Positions 6,836-64,000 of a DNA stretch of 64,000 nt are shown here, piece after piece; the stretch's first letter is position 1; each line of letters opens with the position of its first letter. The notes under the pieces were generated by a model that ran no database searches, had not been told where the DNA came from, and was given only the letters and a program-made list of their open reading frames with translations. This DNA comes from Klebsormidium nitens (Eukaryota > Plantae > Klebsormidiophyceae), in assembly GCA_000708835.1 (NCBI GenBank), contig DF237186.1, forward strand, positions 67,656 through 131,655, given 5' to 3'. Made by a program: the position numbers and the translations under genes.

Positions 6836-9074
6836 GGAGGCTGTGGTGGGGCTGCGGAAGGTTGCTATCCAGAGGGAACATGCAGTAGCCTGGATAGGTG
6901 AACTGTGAGGCAACGAGGTGCGTATACGAGGTGGTTGGAGAAGGTCGCGACGGGTGCCCCAAAAAGTGGGCACGTTGTGAGAGAGGTGGTGAAATGGGCA
7001 CTATCATGTATGCCAATCTCAAGTTACGGTACATAAAGGTAGGATGCGGGTGCGCATGCGGGTGTCGGAATTGTAGCCTGTCCACTGGCTCCTTAGATTC
7101 TCACATTTGTCCTCATGTAAAGGAAGGTAGGAAAACGAGCCTTGTAGATGTTGTCTTGCTACCTTCAGGTTATCGTCATAAGCATAGGTGTAGAGTATCC
7201 GGTTCTACCTAGCTAAACCCTTTTGCGTTGCGTAATAGGCCTTCCATTAAGAAGACCTGCTTGTAATGATGTAAGAGTTCACCTTAAGATGTTTGTCCCC
7301 GTCGTGAGCATCATTTTGTTATGTAATTTAGCCTCTTGTGACAGGTCTTTGATGCTGCCACTTACTTTAGATTGGCATTACGCGTTCGCCGAAGTTGTTC
7401 GTGCACGCTTTGGCACATCATGAAGAAGGCGGTGGCTTAGTAGGACCCCATTTGGGATGGGAGATCCTCACCTTTGTGCAGTGATCACAATCGCACATAA
7501 CTTAGCTAGGTTTGTAAGCAAGACATTGTCTCATCGGGGTTGCTGCAATTGGTCAGATTAGAGAGCATCTCCTTGACGTTGCAAACCCGGATCATAAAAT
7601 CGGGGCCAAGTCAGGGGGACCAAACGCCCCAGGTAAATAGGTTAGCAACATGAACAGTGTTCCAGCAGCCAAACGGCTTATTGCCCGGAGCCGAAAACTG
7701 GTGGGATTGAACCTCCACAGGGTCACCTTCGAAACCCCATGGTTTCGTGTCCGGGCAAAACGCCGTTTAGGAGATGTAGAGGGCTGGTTTAGGTGGGTTT
7801 TACAGCCAAAAACACAGTAACCTTATTCTAACAGTCTTCTTAACCCTCCCCTCAGACCAACCGAGGACCGCATCGGCCTCGGGACATCAGAAATAAGCAA
7901 TCTTGACCGTCAAAGTCAGGAAAATTTCTCATCTGACGGTGCGGAACATGGTTCGCGGACTTTGCGTGGTGTTTGGTCCCCCTGGGCCAAGTCTACTAAT
8001 ACGATGTTGAATATCCGGGCAACTAATTGGCGATACGTGCTGTGGTTCTTTGACATTGCATTGTAATTGTAACTTGTAAGTTTAATGTTGAGGCCTATCA
8101 TCATTGACTCCATTGAACGGCCTAATGTTGCATGGTGCGCAAACTTTTCACGACGCCATACAAATAATGGCATCGATCAATAATTGCTTCGAATTCTGCA
8201 TTAATGCATGGCGCGCGGCCAGAGCTAATTCAAAATTTAAATGAAGAATTATGTTTACGTTGTCGAAGGTTGAATACATTTGCTCCAATCTGTGGCGCTT
8301 CGACGAAAGAGGAGAGGCCTTTAATATGAATTATTACAACCATGAGCCTGAGGCCGGGCACTTTTCGCCGCGTCTGCTCTACCTGGATGGTGCCGGTACG
8401 TACCCGTGTCACAGGGCCCAAACATGGGACAGTGGACACGTACCAGCGGGACTTGGTTGTGTACACTGTACAGACCTAGCAGGGCGCCCGCCCGTCAGCA
8501 GTGTGAATCAAAGACGATTCACAGCAGGTCACTCATTTTTGACACTCTCTCGGAAGCCCCCCGCCTCAATGGTGTCGCTGTTACATTTTCAAACTCGACC
8601 GGTATCGTACCGAGGAAGAGTTCACCCGGAGCACCGTACAGTACAGCTCAAACCAGTACCCCTCCGGTACCGTACCTAACGGTCGGAGACTTGAAGTTTC
8701 GTTTTGACCCGCGCGCGCTTGACTGGAACTTGATCGAGTTGTGTTCAGGTCAGCTGACCAGTCTCCGCCTTGAACTTGAAGTTGAAGTTGCATGAACATT
8801 ATGATTCAGGTTCTCTGCATTGGTCTCATTTTGGAGTGCCCAGCTTTCTTGGAAGGAGGCGGCCATGCGGATCAGTCCACAATTCATATGCAGCAAGGGA
8901 CACGGATCAAGCGTCTTCATTTGCCTCTTGCAAGAGTTGGAGGCCACATCGAAAAATATCTGATCGGAGAGGATCAACAGGGTTTCCATCAGTCGCAACA
9001 GGCAAAGGTGTCGGATCATGCTTCACCGCATTTGGTCCCGGTGACGAAGTCTTCTCCCTAAAAGGGTCCTGGCG

Positions 9075-50649: not shown

Positions 50650-53600
50650 ATGCAACTCCCCGCGGAGTTGCAACGGGGCTGCAAGGACGCGCACGCGCGC
50701 GCTGGACCAGAGCACAATTACGGTAATGTCCGAAGGATGATCAGACAAAGTCAAAGATTACGTCATCCGAGGCAACGTGGCAGATTCTGGTTGCAAACGC
50801 GTACGGAGCGGAATCCCGTTATGTTGACTAACCCGGGGCCGGTAATACGTAACCAACGGTTTGCAACCCCAGAAGGGGAACCCCCTCCTCAAGCTGAGGA
50901 AGTTCAGAGCCTGCTTCTGGAAACGACGTAAGCAACTTCAAACCGCAGAGGGAGGGCTTTGAACTTGAAGCTGAACAAAAGCTTCTGTCCCTTCAAAAAG
51001 ACGAGAGTGCATTCAGCTGGATTCTTGTTGCATAATCCTGGCATTCGTCCAGCTTGCTCTTTTAACGCGGCGGAAGTTGAGAGGCCAGATTCAAGGGAGC
51101 TTGCAAGGAACAAGCATTCATAGCTGTACTTTCACAACTGTTCGCAGCGAGGCGTCACTGAATTGTCGTGGGTGTGTGAGGAAGCTTGCTCTTTTGTTGG
51201 GCCCCAAACGTTGAATTTTCCTTACAAGTGCAAACAAGTGAGTGTGGGTCAACCAGTAGAATTGTGTTTTTTCCTCCCCTGCAGACGGCATTGACTCAAT
51301 GAGGGTGCCATTGTGTTCAGGAGTCGTTCGTGTTATAAGGATGTTCCTGACGTGCGTTTGAGAATAACTCGCATGAGTGTTTGTGCAGTCAGGCACGATT
51401 TTACAGTTTCGTCACTGTTTCGTCACTGTACACTCATAGCTCATTGACCATGAGGCTAGAACCAAATATGACGTGACGAGAGTTGCAGGTTTGTTCGTTG
51501 AACATCTCCCTTGTTGTCTGTTGCACCGACCATCTGTCAGGGATCTGCAGGCTCACAACGATGCCATTGCTAGCTGCCATAGTCTCGCACATCTGGAGCT
51601 AACTCTCATTTTTCCCCATCTGCAGCTCTTATTTCGGACTGAATGACTGGGAGTATGCCTTGCGGGCGAGCCTGTGAAGCGAACTTGCATTTGTAGAAAG
51701 TCCTGACGCATTGTGCCAGGCTGGCAAGAATGCCGGCTATGGGGCCGCAACCCTCTGAGGAGGAGTTGAAGGTCAGGGCCACAGAAGCCCTGGAAGCGCT
51801 TGCGCGTGCTTCCGGCGCCAAGGGCCATATCTGGATGGTAATCAAGGTGAGAACTGCTGATTCTCCAGGGGAGCAGACTGAGTATAACAGATTTGTCAAG
51901 GCCGCGTTTACACATTTTTGAGGTTCACTGAGGCCAACGCCCACGATTTTGTCAGTTGAAGCCAAGACAGAAAGATTACTTTACGTCTAAGTGGAGTGAT
52001 GAAATCAATTTCCAAGTTGAGTAGCTTTGATCCCGGCAATATCCCCCCTTTCAGCTGGCCTGAACCTTGTCACAAAGGTGGTCCCACTTGAAGACAGGAT
52101 GATCATCCTCCTTATGAGTGTTTTGATATCTGCAACTTATGAGGAACTTTTAGGGTTCTGACTCCACAAGGTAGACAATAGTCGAAAAAGCCAATGTCAG
52201 GGATATATTGCTATGCAACGTGCCTATCTCAGAAGGCAGTTCTCTCGAAGGAGAGAGTCTTCCTTAAATGAGTGCTGGCAAGCCAAAGAACCCCATGCCG
52301 AAACGGCGACAAATCGCTTCTGCAGTGCGCTTAGAAATAGATATCAGCAGTCTGCAATGGCCAAGACCTAAAGCCAGGTGGCTAATGTGACTCAAGCAAA
52401 TGGAGACTCTTGCATGACTTCTGACGCTCATCTCTGATGCAGGGGGATGGGGGTAAGATCGGGGGCTGCTCTCCGAGCCTGAGGCCTTATGGAGCTGCGC
52501 TTATGGATGAGGTGGAGAAAGCAACTGAAAAGTGAGTGGTCAGCACACAATGCGTTTGTAAAAGGTGGTAAACAGCTTCATTTTGGATCCTGGAACATAG
52601 TTGCACGTTGCATGAGCCTGTGGAGTAGAGACCAAGCATTGCTCTTTTAGGGTTTGAAATGGAGTGAAGGAGCCATTAATTTGGAAGCCTGGGCTGGAAT
52701 TGGATCAAGTGTACCCGGCACTCCCTCCAAGCTGCGACAGCTTTGACCAAGCTTCTTGGGGCTCTGTTTGCTCAAATAGACCCCTCGTTGGTTACTCCAA
52801 GCACTCGCCTCGCAGCACTCCCCTCCGTGTGAATTCAGTTCGTTCAGTTGTAGGACTAAGCCCCACGTGTCTCCCCCCCCCCAAAAATGCTTAGGTACTG
52901 TGTTCATTGTGTGTTCGTAGTGCGACATAGGATTCATTCCCCATTTTATCCTGTCAAGTCCATTCAGAACCACTCTGTCTTTTGCAGTGGTTCTATCTTT
53001 TGCAACCACAGCCAAGTTCACTTGGGCTGGTGTAAGACGCAAGTCTGATATAAGAAGCACTCCCCCAAATGCTTCTTGTCCTGTCGAACAACCAATACAA
53101 TTCTGCCCTCCATTGCTCCATCCTCAAAGATGGTTATTTAACCTCTTCACTCAATCAAGTTTGAATCCAATGGTACTTCCTCCGTACTTCCTGCGGAATT
53201 CATGGCATAGGAAACAAGTTAATCGAATTCCTGAAAGTAGGTGCCTGCCTCTGCAGACCTGTGAAAGCATGAGCCCTCAGACTTGCTAAGACTGCCACGT
53301 CGTTACGAAACGCACTGTCACTACTGTGGATCAACTTTGGATCAGTCACCCCGTTTTCCCCGAGACAACTGCCCTGTTGTTGCGACCAGCAATTGTGAGC
53401 CCTCTAATCTGCTGAAGCTAAGAAGGTGCTAACCCACCTTAAGGGAGTCCTTATACCCCTCCACAATTGCCCTCTTCATCGTACTTAGAGTCCTGTCTTG
53501 GTTTTGAAGCCTCGAAGCAAAGAAGGTGCTGCAAAGAACCCACGTTATCTCACAGGACCCCAATGATTACTGGCGTAAATCGCCTAACCCAGCTCTTTTC

Positions 53601-56600
53601 ACAAACCGGTTATCGTAACCAGCAACCGTGAAACCTGGGGCCTGCTCAAAGCAGAAAAGGTGCTCCATCATCTTGAAACCCAGCTCCCTGTGACTCTTGA
53701 CGCTACCCTCTCAATCAACCCTGATATTTAACCCAGGTCTTAACCTCCCCTGCAGGCCGGTTATTGTCACTAGCAAGCGCGAACCCTCGGGCCTGCTCAA
53801 AGCCGAGAAGGTGCTGCACACTCTGGCCAAGACAAAGCACGTGGAACTGCACCCCATCGTGGCAACCATGATTCAGGGCCTGAACGAGATCAACAATCAC
53901 AAGCACCCGCGCGTTATGGCAATCACCGACCCAAGCACGGTGAGGCACTCCTCCTGTGTCCTTAACTTGACAAGCGTTGTGTCTCTCAGGTGATAGGCAG
54001 TAAATCTGCAAGAGGTGCTGTTTGCTTGGCTCTTGAAACTTGGGGCAGTACCCCGATATAAGAAATGCTGGGGGATGTGCTTGGTAAAAGATAGGCACTT
54101 GTGTCATATGGAAGGGGGTGGGGGTGGTTTCTGTCACCTTGGGGCCCCTTTCTGTCGGGAGACGACAAACTGTTGGTCAGTGGTCAAAGCCTTGATGTGC
54201 TTAGATCAGACGATTCCCCACAGCGTCATATCTAGCCTTTAGAAGGCCTTGGAGCGGATTTCCATTCCGTGGATGAAAGCAGGTAAGAGCATTCCTTTCC
54301 AGAGTTGGGGGCAGTGCCCCATCAAACACACCACCAGACAGAGCTCCACCTTATTGCTATGTGTGACGTTTTTACCTGTTGAACAGTGTCACCTGATAAC
54401 AGCGCGGGCTTGTTTGAATTGGAGGAGCAGACAGGCAATATTGCACAAGAGGCTGAGCATGAAGCTTTTCGTAGAAGCCTGCTTTGCTGCGACAAAATAG
54501 AGCTGGCGTGTGCGTAAGGAGCTTGTGTTTGGTCCTTGTCTCGAAAGGGACCTAGTCACCCTTCTCAAGCCTCTACTGATGAGGCTGCATGGATCCTTTT
54601 TTTGCGTTCTCCTTTGGGATGATCAATCTTCCCTTTGCCATATTGTTGCGCACATATCACTCTTCTTTGGAGATTGCTGCAACCTGACCTTTCAAACGGG
54701 CCTGCATGCTTCCTTCTCTACTGGTAGTCTTTGGTGTTCTCTCTCTAGTACCCAGCGCAAGCTCTAGGTATTGACAGACCCTTCTTGTGAAGCTGGGTTC
54801 AGAAGTCTTTTGCATGCTGAAGCCAGAGCACTCGATCTGATAAGCAACTCCGATCCCCTTTTACCATTCCAAAACTTTTTCAGCTCCTGCAATTTCAATT
54901 TGGAGCAACTTAGCAACTCTTGACCTCTAGACCACAACTGCCACTTCAACCAATCTTACTAGTAGTACACGAGTCACTACAATTGCCTCAGTAAGTATCA
55001 ATCCTATCGTTCTTTCTGGGCGAAAGTCTGCCTGAGTCTCCGAGGTCACAGCTGCAGCTTTCTTAACGTGGACACGGCAATTAAAATTGTTACGACCAGT
55101 AATGTCTCTGGAAAAACTCTCATCGTGACTGTTTCCGTGGGTTCTGCCCTGTCAAAAAAATCACACTGCTCAGCCACTCTGAACGTTTCGCACTTATCCC
55201 CTGCAGATGCCTGCGTGGTTCCCGTTTCCCCCGGCCGTGTACGCCCCCCGCGCGCAGAAGATGGACCTGCACCAGCTGTTCCACGTCATCGACGTCATCT
55301 TCGGTCAAGTGCGCGGCAACCTGCACGCAATCCAGACGCTCCACTCGATGCTCGACCGCGTCTACAAATCCGGGTCGTGCAGCATCGGGACGCGCGCCGG
55401 GATCGACTCCTTCTTCGAGTTCCTCGAAGACGAGGCGATCGCCAAGATGGGCAAGGTGACGTCGGGCCTCGTGAAGGAGGAGGTCCACGATGACGTCATC
55501 CCCGCGCAGGCGGCGAGCGAGACGAGCGGCGTCGGGGGCGAGGGCGACGGGGAGGCTGAAGCGGCGTCGCGCAAGCGCGCGCGGAGCGCGGACGCGCCGG
55601 GAGGTTTTGCTAACGCGCCGGGAGTTTTCCCTGACGCTTTGCTTCCGAGCGCGTCGCCCGGACACAGCGCCGCGAACAGCACCCCGGCGAACGGGGCCCC
55701 CAATCCGGACGACGAGATCGACTTCGAGAAGTACATGTCGGAGGAAGGGGGTCAGTTCCTGGCGGAGTTCGACGCGCTCACGCGGCCGCAGCCCCAACCG
55801 CCGCAGCCATTCTGGGACGCCGCTCCCGCCATCGTGCCGGCCCCGATGCCCCCGTCCGAACTGGCGGTGGCGTTCGATGCTGACGTGGCGATCGAGGAGA
55901 GCGGCCCGGGGGCGCACATCTGGGAGTACCGCTCGTCGGGGGAGCTCACGCACTCGACCGGCCAGTCGACGCTCGCCACCAACGGCTCTGACGCGCTGCA
56001 GCAGTCGAACGACGGCACGTTCCAGGCCGCCTCCGGAAATGGACACAACTCCACCCCCACCAGCAGCCGAAACTGGGCGCCCGAGTGGTTCGCGGAGCCC
56101 GGGGATCTGTACCCGCGCCCTGACGTGGCGCCACGTCAGCACGGGGTGCCGCTCCTCGGGAACGACGAGGCGCTCGTGCGCGCACGGCTGCAGCAGCAGA
56201 TGAACCTGGCCGAGCAGGAGTGGCCGGCCGGGGGGCAGTTTATGGGCTACCGCAGCCCCACTGAAGCGGCGGACTTCGCTCCGGGGGGCCACAACGCGGG
56301 CTTCCGCAGCCCCCCCGAGGCCGCGGCCTTCCCTCCGAGGCTGGCCAGAAACGACGGACTCTCCGAGTCAATGCGCCGCGACTTCCTGCCGCAGCAGGGG
56401 GCCTACCCCCCTGGAACTTACAACGACGATTACATCCGATTCGGGGGGGCGCCCAACGGCATGGAGCCACGACTCCGCCAGGTGGCCATTGCAATGGCGC
56501 GCGCGCCGTCGTTCTGTCCCTCCCCCTCCCTTCAGGACAGGCCCCCCCCGGCTCCCCCTCAAGTGCCCCCCCCGGCAGCGNNNNNNNNNNNNNNNNNNNN

Positions 56601-58629
56601 CCCCCTACCCCTTCCCACGGACCGACGGCCCCCCCCCGGCCGTCCCCCTCCAACGTGCCCCCCCCGGCCACGCGCACGCCCACGGCTTCCAAATCGGGGG
56701 GTAGTTCTGCAGAAGGCCAAGGTGCTCATCGCTGGGGCTCCCAAGCCTCGCCCCCCTCCTGAAAAGGCGGAACCGTTCCCGTACTCACGGAGCGCCCCTC
56801 TGGGGGTCGCGACGGCGCCTTCGGATGGCCCCCGGAGCCGAGAGTTTGAGCCGCTGGGGAGGTCTAGGTCGGGCGACCAGCCTCAGGGCGCGTTTTCCGG
56901 GCCCCTTTCCGGCCGGAAGGGCTCCGGGGAAAAGGACCGGAGAGGCTTGCCTGGCCCTCTGCAATCCTGGGGGGACAGTCCGAAGTCCGGGGACCTGAAC
57001 GAGCGCAGCATTTCCAGGGAGGGGCGCCAAGGGTCCGGGGACCTGTCAGCCAAGCAGTGCGCAGGGGACAGCAGCGGGAAGGCGCTGAAAGTGCTCGGGC
57101 TCGAGGAGCACGGTGGCCCTGGCAGCACAGGGGGATCCCTCGGGTGGACCGGGTCCCAGGACGGGAGCGGCAGCTTCGACGAGGACGGGGAGAGCGGCGG
57201 GGGCAAGAAGGGGCTCGCGCGCTTCCTGCCGAAGCTGGGCCGAGGCAAGGGGAAAGCAGCGAAGGAGAGCGAGAAGAGTTCGAAAGAGGACTCTGCCTTG
57301 TATCGGGACCGTTCATTGGGCGGGCAGTCCACTGGGAGCGTCAGTTCGGGATCGGACGTTCCACTACCCAGTCAGGGCAGTGGGGGGTGGTTTGCCACAG
57401 AGATACTTCCCCGGCAGGGGAGCGGCCCCATTTCGGGGGGGCAGTCTCCGCCCCCCGACAGCCTGTACGAGCCTCTTGGGAGAACCCCCCCGGGGGAGTG
57501 CGAGGCCTTTCCCCGGCGGCGTGACGTCCAGCGCTTTGACAGTTTCCGGTCGGTCGGGTCGCTGACGTCCGACGAGCCGGAGAGCGACGCGTGCGAGAGC
57601 TTCCCGTTCCGGCGCCCGGCGCCCCAGACGGAGAAGGGATTCCCCTCGCAGCGCCCGGGAGCGGAGTCGGAGGGCCTCCAGCGGCTCATGCAGCGCCTGA
57701 GCGTGTACGAGGGCGTTGATCCCGCGGCGGATCGCTCAGCCGCCGATTTTGCAACAAAGACGGCACGAACCGTGCTGCCGGCGGCGGCTTCCCGTCAGCA
57801 GAACGGTGTGGCTGTGAAGGAGGCCGAGATGGGCTCCCAGGAGAAGGCCCGAGCGGAGAACGGGATGAGCCCGCGGAGCATTTTGACCGAGGGGCCATCT
57901 GTTGGCACGCCCGCACGTCGTGTTCGAGGACGTGTGAGCGGAGAAAACGCGTACGACGAGGAAGAGGAGGAGCCGAAGTCCCCTGCATTCGCTCTGGGCA
58001 TTGGTGGGTCCATCTAACGGAACCTTGGGACTAGTGCCCATTCAAGGGGCTTGCAGATTAAGCCTTTCGTTTCAGCTGAGTTTTGCATATGAGATTGCGA
58101 TTCTGTGAGAACCTCGTCTTTGCTATGGGGACCCCGCTTTACAGGAATTCTTTGGCAGCTGTTGAGACTGTACCTTACTCCTTGCAAAGTCCCGAGTTTA
58201 TCTGAACACTTAAATCGCGAAGTTTTTGTGAGCTGCGTCAAGTCCGCTTCTGGTCCTTCTCGTAAGCTCATGCCTCAGCAGCGGCGTTGTGGAAAATGAT
58301 CCTTCCGCTGCATCACTGCAGGTACTGAAGACGAGGTTGACTTTGACGACGATACCGGTGTCTCTCACGTTGGGCCGAGTGCCCGCAGCGCCCCAGCAAC
58401 AGTGGTCAGCGTGAGAATCATCAGTGATGCAGCTGCGGTGACGGCCCTGCCAGCTGTCCCGGTCACTAAAGCGCCCGGGTCACACGCACCGGGCACTCAG
58501 AGGGGTGTGATTGCGGCCGCACCCGTTGTTGACGGTGTGGCCCCTGTGAACGGGCGGGCAACTGAGGGTGCGGTACACGATGATCCGTTGGTACGGTTGC
58601 AGCGGTTAAGAGTGGGGGTTGGTTCATGA
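50650..58629 (+). CDS. Large uncharacterised multi-exon protein with a short conserved-looking core and a long disordered tail
   Basis: Well-supported in-phase exons: 53756-53939, 55207-58003 (spanning the N gap) and 58322-58629. Upstream candidates (50650-50722, from 51285, 51697/51720-51847, from ~52988) have good splice signals, but their linkage is unresolved. No family was recognised. Confidence 0.6.
53400..53680 (+). repeat. Three degenerate copies of the start of the 53756 exon
   Basis: ccggttattgtcactagcaagcgcgaaccctcgggcctgctcaaagccgagaaggtgctgcac recurs as ccggttatcgtaaccagcaaccgtgaaacctggggcctgctcaaagcagaaaaggtgctccat (~53606-53668). The anchor agaaggtgct also occurs at 53521 and 53421. 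Confidence 0.85.
56581..56600. other. Assembly gap (20 N) in a C-rich, proline-coding stretch
   Basis: Run of n. Frame continuity across it cannot be verified. Confidence 1.
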
Positions 58630-60375
58630 CGGCCACGAAAGCAGGTCGGCGGTTTAGTTGTCGCCATACATCAGATCAAGTTGGAAGGCTCTGTCGGTTT
58701 CTGGTTAGTATTTATATTTCAGCACACCGGTTTACATAAGACACGATCGTGATTGCAGTTATGGGATCTTGCAAAAAGGTGGACCGCTGATACGTATGTT
58801 AGAGGGGAGATGTCTGCAGAAGGTGGACGTGAAAGGGGTTTAGTCTGGTACGTGGGTTAATGTTGAACAGAGAAGCGGTCAATCACCAGTCTTGTTTGGA
58901 TTGCAGACCAATGCATAGCTTACATGAAAGTAACACACATATATTGAACTTCGCCAACATACACTTACCTGTTGTTGTTCAGGTTTGTAGTATCCTGTCT
59001 TGCTGCTTGCTAAAGTACTAGCCGCCAGCCCTCTTTGCACAATGTACGTGCAATTTGTGCATCACATTCAAGCCTCAAATGCATGCATATCATGATCACA
59101 TTGCTCCTTTGATTGCATGGTTCGAAACTGGAGTTGAGCATGAGTCTATGGCCTGATCGCGCGTAGGCCGCCATCATTGGAATACCTTTGCGTCAGTTAA
59201 GCTGCAGGCTCCCTTCGTGACGTACGTACGCCAGCATTCTGCATGGCCGTGACTTTTAGAACGTCGCGACAAGACAAATCAGTCACTTGATTGAAACAAC
59301 AATGAAATCATTGTTGGAGCAAGAGGCCATGCATGAACCATGACATGGTCTCTTTCCAAAGACCCCGCGCCGTAGCCAGTTCGGCCATAGGCTTCTCAGG
59401 GCATACATGTAGTGACCTACCTATGGTGTGTGTTCCGGCCATTGGCTTATGATGCGATACGTCGAACTGCACGCAGCACGAGTGGACATGCGCTTCCGAC
59501 CGAAGTGCGATCAGGTGCTCCGCGCCGGTGCGGCCGCGATCGGGGATCCGGCTGCGGCGCGCTTGACCTCGCCGATCGACGGCGACTAGCTGGTAAGCAC
59601 CGTAACCACGATGTAAAATCTACGTTTAGTAACCCGAACTCACTGCCACAGGCGGCCTGTACCGCGCCGCCGGTTCCATCTTTCCCGGCTGGTCTGGACC
59701 CTGGCCGGCCAGGAGTCTGGGCATCGGAATACTCGCGAGTACAGCGATTGCACAGTGATGAGCCTCCCACCGTTCGATGAACAGGGCCTTTTGAGCCCCG
59801 AATGCAAACCCTTTGTATAAGCCCTTGCAGAGGCCGGGCAAACCCGCGGCAGTTGGCGCGACCTTGCATTTCCACCCAACCCAGCCGGGTACATCTACCG
59901 GGGGCCCCGAGCCCAACCCCCTCTGGCATAAGTTATGAGCCAAAAGGGGCCCGGCGCAGCTATACGGGCTCAGCCCGTGCCGTTACCAAGCACTCACAGA
60001 CCGTTCCCATTCAGCACGCCAAAAGAAGACGTCCAGCTTCCTTGCCCATTGAGATGAGCCCTCGCAATGTGCAAATCAGCAGCAATCTTGCTCGCTTTAC
60101 ACAGTTCGCTTTCTTCGGTGCCAATTTCTCAGCGGTTTAGCGGCTTCCGTGTGCGTTAGGCCTCTTTGCAGTAGAATGACAGAGCCAAAGCAGGCGGCCT
60201 TAGAGAAGCTGCAGGGCAGATTGGTGTGGCTCAGGGCTTTCAGGTTGGCCAGCAATTAATGTCAACAGGAATTGGTGTTCTGTAAAGCGTTGTGGGGGCG
60301 CTTCCTAGTATCAGTCTCATTATCTCTCTTGGCCTTTTAGGAGCAAATCAGAGCTGGCCCTTCAACTGTGTCGTC

Positions 60376-63300
60376 ATGGCAAAAGGCCGCCCTCATGGCC
60401 GGTCCAAGTCTGACCACAGAGTTTGTCAGGCAGCCCGACATGCGCTAGCGGCTGAGTACAGGGAGAGGATCGCCATCAGTGCTGAGTTGCAGGAGGCGCG
60501 GATTGCGGCGGTTAACGTAGAGTGCAACGTGGAAGATGCCCCTCGTAGGCGGCGGGGCCAGAAGTCTAAGGATCCAAAGACCAAGGCATCAGCTGCTCGG
60601 GTGTCAGCACAGGGCCATTCTTCCAAGGCAACTGGCAGTGGGAAAAAGAAAGCAAACAAGCGATTGGAACATGCGCATGGCAAAGCTGCACAAAGCGGTG
60701 AGTTTCTGGTGCATGGCTTCTGCGTTGAATGCTTCAAGTTATGAGGCGGACGCAAAGCAGAAGCTGGGACATGCTGGTGTGTAAGATAGAAAGGTGACGG
60801 GTGGGTGGCCTTGCAATGTGTACCAAGAAAGAGCATATCTGTTCTAGTATTGGAAGGAACGAAGTTGGTACACACTGCTTTTGGTAGCGCGGTCAGAATG
60901 GTTAAAGGGTGGCTGGCTCTGCAGTTACTCATAAGATTCTGAGGAGTCTTAGCGGGCATGTTCGTCCCTGGGACGTACCAGACTTTGCCTTTTTCTCTTT
61001 AGAACATAAGAAGCTAATTCTTGGTACATACTGTCAATCACAAAGTTCTAAGCAATCTTAGCGGGCATGGCCGTTCCTGGGACGTACCGGACTTTGCCTC
61101 TTTCTTTTTAGAACATAAGAGGCTGATTCTTGGTACATGCTGTCAATCACAAAGTTTCAAGCAATCTTAGCGGGCATGGCCGTCCTTGCAGTGTACCAAA
61201 ATCAACCTCTTTCTCTTTAGATTATAAAAGGCTGATTCTTGGTACGCGCTGGCAATTACAAAGTTCCAACCCCACTGCCGAAGAAAGAGACATGACTGCA
61301 AAAGGCAGGGGCACACACCAAGTCTTGCAGGCATTTCCAAATTTAGAGTTCAGGTTCCCTACCCAACCTCTGCGCTTCTTTATTGCAGACGTGCACAGTC
61401 TGCATTGTCATGCGTGCGGCGCCACTGCTGAGGTTGGGCTGAGGGGAAGCAAGGAGGGGGGCAGCGTCAAGTACTCATGCAGAGGGCACTCCATGTCCAA
61501 TGGTTGCTTTCGAATCGACCGAGACCGCGCAGGTGAGAGATTTTGGGGAGCCTGATGTTGACATGGTCTAGATGCAATGCCATGCTCATAGCTGCCCTCC
61601 CATTGCCAGCAATGAGCCTTTAGAAAAGACTGTCGAGAGGTTCAAATGCTCTGTGTGCTCCTGCAGCATGGGCAGAGGACGCAGAGATGCGCCGCCTGAG
61701 AGCAGAGGAGAGGAGATTGGAAGCAGAGCTGCGGCAACTTGGAGGGGCCTCGTTTGCTGCAAAGCCGACATCAGGTGGCGTGTGGCGCGATCTGATCCAA
61801 GTGGTTGTTCTCCCTTACAGAACTTGGGGGCTGCAAGCCCCCTATCATGCCTCTAATGCATTATGGCTCCTTCTGCTGTGCACTTTACAGATAAATCAAT
61901 AGTGACGGCAACTCAGCGCTCATTGTCTGCTTCTGCAGCTAGGAGTGAGTTCCCAACAACAGGGCTCTGGGCTTCGATGCACATGAGCGAGTCACTCATA
62001 GGTAAGGCACTTCAATTCTGGATCTGCAGTCCACTCGTGAAGCATGTGGCCTTCTTTGAACATGCAAACACGTGTAAAGCACTTGGGCTCCTACGACATA
62101 TCTGACATGTTTCGTTTGGAATTTGCTGGCTGCTTGTGGATGAGGACAGCGCGGCGCACATGCAGCATCTGAATGTGGCGTCCTCCCATGCAGAGATGCT
62201 ACTCACTATCGGCGGAGTCGAACGCAACCCGGGCCCTACTACAAAGGAGGTGAGCCCGGACAAGGGGACTTGCTTCCAGCAGTTCAGGGTGTTACCAGCA
62301 CCAATTGTCTTCGAGCATTAAGGAGCAACTGTGTGACTTCTCTCAGTGTCCATGCTATCGAGAGCGGGCTATAAATGGTTGTGCTCATTTTTGCTGTGGC
62401 CCCTCCACAGGAGAAAGAGCTGGCTTTGAAGAAGAGCTGGCAGGAAGTCGATTCCGACATTGAACCTGAGCTGCTAGACTACCTGGCAAAGGAGGCACTC
62501 ACCTTGGCACGCTGGAGAGGGACGCCCGAGGACCTCCGCCCTAAGCGTCTGAGCGACTTGCAACAAGACTACCCAGGGCCAGGAAGTTGGTTGAAGGGCT
62601 GGAATGCGATCTTCGATAAAGCTGCAGGTAAGCAGCTCCCTCTATCCAATGAGTAGGCTAGCTTCGATGCAATTCGCTTGGAGATCAGGCCTATCGAGGT
62701 ATTCATCGAATACTGGACATAAGGGAGCCGAGCCTTCTGGTGTTGTTCGTCAGCAAGTGCGCCCAGATAGCTGGAAGAGAATGGCACGACAGGGGCTTTG
62801 CTGATTGGAAGGTCTCTCTTGGTTTTTCTGCTGATGTGATTGCGGTCTGCTCTTGTTTGGTATCAATCCTTCCGAGGATGGTGCATGCTAAGCATGGTGT
62901 GATTCCTAGCAGAAGCTGAGTTGCTCTGAAGCAGAAAGTTGTTTGCTGTGCAATTTTGTTGGCAGAACAGGTGCAACTCCTGAGCATCAGGGTGCTTGTC
63001 AGCCGTCACCCTTATGCAATCCCCCAATGGTTAATTCTTCACCTTGCTCCTGTCTGAGAGGCAACCATTGCGGCGCCCTCATCTGCTCTTCCTTCTGCTG
63101 CAGTTGCTGGCAGGAGGGGTCAGGATGCAGAAGCGGGCCACTCTGGGGATGCTGCTCAGGGAAATCAGACTCGTGAGTTCTGCCGCTCATCTTCTGTGCT
63201 CTTGCGTTACGGTATACTTGTTTCTGCAGAGTGCTTCTTGAGGTTGCTTGTCGCTTGCGCTCGCCGCCTTACTTGTGCACGATGGACAACTCAAAGATAG

Positions 63301-64000
63301 GCCTAGCAACCCAGCACCATCCCTAGTACCTGGCTCTTGTCTCTCTTCTGGGGTTTCTGCTGATGTGGCTGCCTTTTGCTATTGTCTGGTATCAAAGTGC
63401 CCGCAAGCCGCTCTTCTGACAAGCAATGCCTGCATTGTGGCTAAGTCTGAACACGTGCCTCATAGTCTTCTTGAGTCTGTGATCTGTGGGCTACTTGTTG
63501 CATCGAGTGTTTCCTTGAGGTGATAAACATGGTTTAAACCTATCTTCCAAAGCATGCGCCTACAGGGAAACTGAATAGTAAGCTGTTTCCAGACAAACTC
63601 GACCTGACCAAAAGCTTGGTGCTCTGCAGGGGTCCCATCCAGTGCTAAACCCAGCTTCAAACGGTCAACATGCCTTGATACATCAGACATTGGGGTTCTT
63701 GCGAAGCGTCTGGTGAAGAAAAGGAGATTGGAGCTTGAGCAAGCAGGAGAAACGGAAAAGGGCCTCTTCGAGATTGGCTGGAGCATCCTGCCGCAGGCAA
63801 AACCTTTGGGTGTCAAGGATCTACGGTTTCTAGTGCTGAAGGCAGAGCAGAAACTCGGAGTTGCGGTGATGGGGCGCTCTCATTTCAAGGCTCTAGTAGA
63901 TCGTGCAGTTGCGCTTATGGAGGGAAAGCTGCCGGGTGGTGGGCGGAAGGTCCTCATGCACGGGCCTGCAGGGTTCGGCAAAACACATCTCCTTCTGCAG
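60376..64000 (+). CDS. Spliced gene with an internal 2A-like peptide and a downstream P-loop NTPase; partial, runs off the right edge
   Basis: Exons 60376-60697, 61389-61532, 61667-61774, 61939-62001, 62194-62249, 62411-62627, 63104-63172 and 63630->64000 are all GT-AG and phase-compatible. They contain SLIGEMLLTIGGVERNPGP (motif 62211-62237) and Walker A VLMHGPAGFGKT (63962-63985). Confidence 0.75.
60947..61270. repeat. Three tandem copies of a 109-bp unit in intron 1 of the 2A/NTPase gene
   Basis: tcttagcgggcatg starts at 60947, 61056 and 61165, each followed by gtacc...ttag...ttcttggtac...caat..caaagtt. A decayed fourth copy lies at ~60810-60880. Confidence 0.92.

Follow-up and report, generated by a model that had tools for sequence, protein, structure and literature searches.

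A probable StopGo (2A) recoding signal on its own mini-exon in a spliced and expressed nuclear gene of Klebsormidium nitens

StopGo (2A) peptides have been regarded as a device of viruses and retrotransposons. Their use by cellular genes was described as rare, and plant viruses were found to be almost without StopGo (PMC12846837). In the genome of Klebsormidium nitens, a match to the StopGo core lies inside a nuclear gene, within a stretch of 64,000 nucleotides of contig DF237186.1 that was analysed here and is called the window. This raised the question of whether a gene of the green lineage uses ribosome skipping to obtain two proteins from one open reading frame. We consider it likely that the site is a genuine StopGo recoding signal in a spliced and expressed Klebsormidium-type gene, and that it separates a basic zinc-cluster protein from an NTPase protein. 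Here, a gene family of the green lineage keeps the signal on an exon of its own, under selection and in expressed, spliced genes. With this family, the question of why a cell splits one open reading frame into two proteins can be studied in a natural system.

Gene structure and position of the core peptide

Transcript contigs from four runs, belonging to four studies, were aligned to positions 59000-64000 of the window. The RNA origin of the runs was a guess, and since the contigs skip exact GT..AG introns, their source must be spliced RNA. An eight-exon gene with GT..AG junctions was identified in the transcript contigs, which continues beyond the end of the window (Table 1). The joints 61774/61939, 62001/62194 and 62249/62411 are carried by contigs of all four runs and studies. 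The last two had been predicted by an earlier reading of the DNA without database searches (the sequence-only reading), and both were found as predicted. The joint 60697/61389 is present in three runs, and exon 3 is linked to exon 2 by a loose contig end at 61663. Exons 4 and 5 both have AG acceptors and GT donors. Contigs across exons 3-6 show zero mismatches to the locus, and introns 4 and 6 have zero depth.

The transcript contigs begin near 60091, and translation presumably starts at the ATG at 60376. From there, the spliced open reading frame of the eight-exon model is open for 450 codons. The contigs over exons 1 and 8 have 95-99% identity to the locus, and loose contig ends such as ...SAPMSQSLIA are joined at 62196, which indicates that close paralogues are expressed too. 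Since the 5' contigs carry mismatches, they derive from paralogues.

Table 1. Features of the StopGo gene in the window (positions of the window)
Feature	Position	Strand	Basis
Upstream region and 5' UTR common to L042	59980-60283	+	blastn, 77-92% identity to L042:2860-3095
Exon 1, putative start codon and basic Lys/Arg-rich N-terminus	60376-60697	+	first in-frame ATG of the open reading frame
Exon 2, Cys/His cluster	61389-61532	+	translation; cluster kept in homologues
Exon 3, Arg/Glu-rich helical, coiled-coil-like segment	61667-61774	+	transcript contig joints
Exon 4, ends ...WASMHMSESLI, beginning of the hydrophobic stretch that precedes the 2A core	61939-62001	+	translation and transcript contigs
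Exon 5, 56-nt mini-exon, (E)MLLTIGGVERNPG/PTTKE, whole 2A/StopGo core	62194-62249	+	translation and transcript contigs
Core octapeptide GVERNPGP	62214-62237	+	joined-exon translation
Predicted unformed Gly-Pro bond (Gly 62232-62234, Pro 62235-62237)	between 62234 and 62235	+	core position
Exon 6, N-terminal region of the predicted downstream product	62411-62627	+	62627/63104 joint in four runs
Exon 7, short Gly/Ala/Gln-rich linker	63104-63172	+	63172/63630 joint in two runs
Exon 8, first part of the P-loop NTPase (truncated at the window end)	63630-64000	+	contigs run past 64000 (loose ends)

Several further observations were made on the gene and its surroundings. The apparent 5' UTR (60091-60375), over which the contigs are mismatched, contains short upstream open reading frames with ATGs at 60177 and 60260. 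In intron 1, a 109-nt unit is present in three tandem copies, 73-84% alike, at 60920-61269; contig depth is low there (2-12), and most of the stretch is absent from the homologous locus L042 described below, whose alignment to the window shows 389 gap columns in this intron. Introns 6 (62813-62866) and 7 (63342-63395) each hold one copy of a 54-nt direct repeat (80% alike), both at a similar distance from the next exon. The contig depth of exon 7 is several times that of its neighbours, with many loose ends, which implies that many other transcripts contain similar sequence. Directly upstream of the gene, a 936-codon open frame was identified at 55207-58017, which is rich in Pro, Gly and Ser and belongs to a stretch of 69% G+C with an internal run of N.

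Joining exon 4 to exon 5 yields, in a single frame, RSEFPTTGLWASMHMSESLIEMLLTIGGVERNPGPTTKE (also written ...GLWASMHMSESLIEMLLTIGGVERNPGPTTKE), with SESLI, EMLLTIGGVERNPG and PTTKE following each other around the junction. The in-frame splice claimed by the sequence-only reading was thus upheld. Its reading SLIGEMLL was corrected, since the junction codon G/AG codes for Glu and there is no extra Gly. The octapeptide GVERNPGP fits the StopGo core definition, which has been widened to (D/G/C/N)(V/I)ExNPGP (PMC12846837). Upstream of it lies SESLIEMLLTIG-G, a Leu-rich, helix-prone segment with (A/G/S)G at p12. This is a recognised StopGo type, as one Leu-rich upstream motif described in PMC12846837 ends with (A/G/S)G at this position. 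In the K. nitens paralogue GAQ93188.1, the stretch ahead of the core was modelled as a helix.

The Gly in place of the canonical Asp had been taken as a possible sign of weakness. This concern falls, since Gly at p12 is a standard variant, found in viral StopGo sites as often as Asp (1,207 vs 908; PMC12846837). The site lies inside one continuous spliced open reading frame with coding sequence on both sides, and NPG ends at nucleotide 678, or codon 226, of the open eight-exon model, in agreement with the 226-residue upstream product that had been proposed. The peptide had also been described as assembled across an intron. This holds for the upstream helix, which crosses the intron; the core itself is located entirely on exon 5.

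A chance match, or an exon 5 that lies outside the mature mRNA, has a negligible probability. With the six-frame amino-acid frequencies of the window itself, 0.0006 matches to (D/G/C/N)(V/I)ExNPGP are expected per window. Transcript contigs of four studies join exon 5 to its neighbours at exact positions, and homologues keep the motif. On these three grounds, a chance match and an unspliced or skipped exon were both rejected. In the whole window, only one other NPGP was identified, at 50830, and it is without 2A features.

Conservation of the mini-exon in homologous loci

Homologous loci were identified in a 9.9-kb Logan contig (L001) and in a 9.8-kb JGI metagenome contig (L042), the latter and a further locus, L043, being found via the open reading frame that spans exon 5. 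L001 codes for an NTPase with 43% amino-acid identity to exon 8 (tblastn, all aligned positions). Two kilobases upstream of it, a 59-nt mini-exon encodes TLLMIGGIETNPGPAVTVE, with the peptide TLLMIGGIETNPGP. Its DNA reads catgcag/CG ACG CTT CTG ATG ATC GGG GGC ATC GAA ACC AAC CCT GGG CCT ...GAG/gtgagg, sharing the catgcag acceptor and the gtgag donor with exon 5 of the window. For six conserved residues of the L001 peptide, the codon differs from the one used in the window, which argues for selection on the peptide.

The corresponding peptide is AMLLTIGGVERNPGP in L042 (encoded stretch AMLLTIGGVERNPGPTAKE), EKLLMIGGVERNPGP in L043 (encoded stretch EKLLMIGGVERNPGPTADE) and ATLLNIGGVEPNPGP in GAQ93188.1. 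In all four homologues the StopGo core is kept and the flanks vary; within the core, the window and its homologues differ only at the free position x (R, P or T). The sequence-only reading had named a lack of conservation among homologues beforehand as a refutation of its claim; the motif was found in each of these homologues.

GAQ93188.1 (KFL_013500020) has the same architecture as the gene in the window. The two Cys/His clusters are about 59% identical over 46 residues by visual count, and in the paralogue the cluster is followed by the Arg/Glu helix, by ...WASM.MS..LI..LL.IGGVE.NPGP and by a region like exon 6. The paralogue differs in the helix sequence and in the free residue of the core, which is P instead of R. 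The public gene model ends at 337 amino acids, before any NTPase.

In L042, all six leader exons are present with identical lengths and an intact open reading frame. DNA identity to L042 is 94.6% for exon 5 and 97.2% for exon 6 (dS 0.04), and 80.7% for the intron between them; within the leader, conservation is highest in exon 6. The upstream protein (dS 0.48, dN/dS 0.32 to L042) is, judged by this ratio, under purifying selection. Exons 5-6 together (62194-62627, compared to L042:4944-5377) have a dS of 0.04, while that of the upstream exons is 0.48. The low value may reflect either constraint on synonymous sites or gene conversion confined to these exons.

The closest relative of exon 8 was found in another locus, L002. 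As it contains a frameshift and a stop codon and has no 2A within 10 kb upstream, this locus is read as a probable pseudogene copy.

Skipping, falloff or one fusion protein

In the preferred reading, a genuine StopGo signal, a single mRNA with a single open reading frame would be translated up to ...MLLTIGGVERNPG, where the nascent chain in the exit tunnel would block formation of the Gly-Pro bond. The basic protein of 226 residues would then be released, and translation would resume at Pro. The second protein is predicted to start with PTTKEEKEL and to consist of a conserved 77-residue N-terminal region, encoded by the end of exon 5 together with exon 6, which a short linker joins to a P-loop NTPase that extends past the window. 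Some ribosomes would probably stop after the release (falloff), leaving the upstream protein in excess. For the alga itself, skipping, the ratio of the products and the roles of both proteins are what we infer here.

The peptide has already been catalogued and tested in a reporter by Snell and Matreyek (bioRxiv 10.64898/2026.06.17.732966), whose list comprises 4,218 2A-like peptides of non-viral origin, of which 3,271 were assayed in HEK293T cells. The peptide of the window is a further StopGo case and not the first one. The 60-nt oligonucleotide in Table S5 of the preprint is identical to nucleotides 622-681 of the spliced coding sequence and runs across the 62001/62194 junction, so that the public annotation uses the same splice.

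In the reporter of that study, splitting of the chain leads to a loss of green fluorescence. For the window peptide SESLIEMLLTIGGVERNPGP, sort-seq scores of R 2.65, G 2.49 (SD 0.64, n = 4) and IR 2.77 were given, compared to R 2.25, G 2.54 and IR 2.30 for P2A and R 2.92, G 3.23 and IR 2.99 for the dead control P2A-NAGA. On these scores the peptide looks active, its G being like that of P2A and unlike that of the dead control, with the reservation that the value is noisy and comes from HEK293T cells. It was also stated by the authors of the preprint that single peptides need their own confirmation.

Two alternatives to the preferred reading have to be weighed against these data. In the first, the site would act mainly by falloff, with release of the chain but without restart, so that the gene would carry a translational attenuator and would give mostly the 226-residue protein and little NTPase. 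This is compatible with the preprint data on related peptides. The near-identical peptide KRSLIAMLLTIGGVESNPGP was classed as 'falloff only' in HEK293T cells, as was its Gly-to-Asp version, and for LLLVLLVLLVIGGVEMNPGP the N-terminal band alone was seen on western blots. For the window peptide, however, the downstream reporter scores no lower (IR 2.77) than for P2A (2.30), and the peptide of the paralogue GAQ93188.1, SQLLIATLLNIGGVEPNPGP, was labelled 'skipping' in Table S7 of the preprint. In addition, the most conserved part of the leader, exon 6, lies downstream of the site, which implies that the downstream product matters. Falloff as the main outcome is therefore considered unlikely.

In the second alternative, the motif would be an inherited relic at which Klebsormidium ribosomes do not skip, and one fusion protein would be made. 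In one heterologous context, skipping was abolished by Gly at p12: a trypanosome 2A into which Gly was placed at this position (LDARRLLLLISGGVERNPGP) was scored as 'nonskipping'. A relic is nevertheless very unlikely: the core is kept across the homologues while flanks and third codon positions change, and the green score of the window peptide equals that of P2A, noisy as it is (SD 0.64, n = 4).

In the accessible parts of the preprint, the peptides are listed, but neither the algal genes nor their splicing and payloads are discussed. Only the 20-residue peptides are on public record so far, and in the literature searched no description was found of the gene structure, the conserved mini-exon or the reuse of the leader.

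Predicted products, leader reuse and related systems

The predicted upstream product has 226 residues, a mass of 24.5 kDa and a pI of 10. Its basic, hydrophilic, Lys/Arg-rich N-terminus is followed by the Cys/His cluster of exon 2 and the Arg/Glu-rich helix of exon 3. The cluster, C-x2-C-x20-C-x2-H-x5-C, is kept in L042, L043 and GAQ93188.1, and a weak hint of a treble-clef zinc finger was obtained for it with Pfam (E 0.063).

That an NTPase follows the 2A, as the sequence-only reading had held, is supported by the Walker A motif GPAGFGKT in exon 8 (63953-63976). This is the last feature in the window and the only NTPase motif visible there. The Pfam matches of the window NTPase, nSTAND_NTPase5, AAA_16 and NACHT, were all below threshold (NACHT with E 0.16 and 12.2 bits vs a cut-off of 26.7). 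For the homologous NTPase P0002, AAA_22 was matched with 26.4 bits vs a cut-off of 27, the Atlas clusters that resemble it are fungal and contain NACHT, IstB or nSTAND3, and the AlphaFold2 model of this homologue has a mean pLDDT of 40.8. When exon 8 was compared with 1.84 billion representative proteins, four short fragments were matched. Word-index protein searches with P0002 and with the exon-6 open reading frame returned only themselves or L042. Exact look-ups of two open reading frames of the window found neither on record, a metagenome scan with exon 8 gave zero relatives, and PDB, PADLOC and Pfam searches gave only generic P-loop matches. For the C-terminal open reading frame of L001, zero matches were obtained in Pfam and the Atlas.

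The similarity between the window and L042 begins near 59980 and ends at 62758, inside intron 6 (L042:5504). Past this point, L042 continues with a different P-loop, AIIGNPG/IGKS, and with a C-terminal open reading frame at 7583-8155, which resembles oomycete and trypanosome RHSP clusters in the Atlas (scores 0.96-0.97). This resemblance concerns the different payload of L042 and not that of the window. As a lead, it suggests that the L042 payload may resemble the Crinkler/RHS type. The donor of exon 6 in L042 is GC and not GT.

The segment that spans the upstream region and exons 1-6 behaves as a leader cassette, since in L042 the same unit precedes another NTPase payload. The description of the gene as a 'domesticated' cellular gene goes too far for a multi-copy family in which one leader precedes different NTPase payloads; it resembles a conflict or selfish gene family more closely. 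It is possible, and is proposed only tentatively, that the cassette is portable, and that Klebsormidium recombines it, with its zinc-cluster protein, its StopGo exon and the N-terminal region conserved in the second product, onto varied payloads that are NTPases, nucleases or other enzymes. In that case, StopGo would co-produce a fixed partner with each variable and possibly toxic payload. If true, this would be a eukaryotic conflict system of modular design that relies on ribosome skipping.

A comparable modularity is known from the Crinkler/RHS (CR) proteins, in which a conserved N-terminal part or variable header is combined with varied NTPase-REase payloads (Zhang et al. 2016, as reviewed in PMC5289972). 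Like the family described here, they are modular, have a recombination-prone junction to varied NTPase payloads and occur in free-living eukaryotes (PMC5289972). However, no 2A end has been reported for CR headers, and the payload in the window is visible only at its Walker A region. Sea-urchin NOD-like receptor genes are also cellular genes with a 2A ahead of a STAND-like NTPase. There, the 2A follows a signal sequence and serves dual targeting, whereas in the window it follows a basic protein of 226 residues. An assignment to the NLR/NACHT proteins with an N-terminal 2A was not obtained for the gene in the window, as NACHT stays below the cut-off and a basic, hydrophilic N-terminal part of 226 residues takes the place of the signal sequence.

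With the viral StopGo sites that combine Gly at p12 with the Leu-rich motif (PMC12846837), the site in the window shares G(V/I)ExNPGP after LL-x-I-G and the same proposed mechanism. These viral sites are found in RNA-virus polyproteins, whereas the one described here is located on its own exon of a nuclear gene. A recent viral insert was rejected as a reading of the gene.

The peptide belongs to the same class as the 2A-like leaders of non-LTR retrotransposons (LL[LV]IGGVExNPGP type). In metagenomes, the DNA pattern for LLxIGG[VI]ExNPGP was found in 39 contigs (L003-L041), mostly before Cys-rich or endonuclease-type open reading frames. No homology of these contigs to the gene in the window was detected outside the peptide, and no Pfam match to reverse transcriptase or APE endonuclease was obtained in the exons of the window or in the downstream open reading frames of L001 and L042. 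On both grounds, a retrotransposon open reading frame was rejected. In the 39 contigs themselves, LL[LVI]IGG[VI]ExNPGP is a common leader of seemingly animal-type retrotransposon open reading frames, often followed by a Cys-rich segment similar to CSGCDRNLKSGTQCDxCGRWF.
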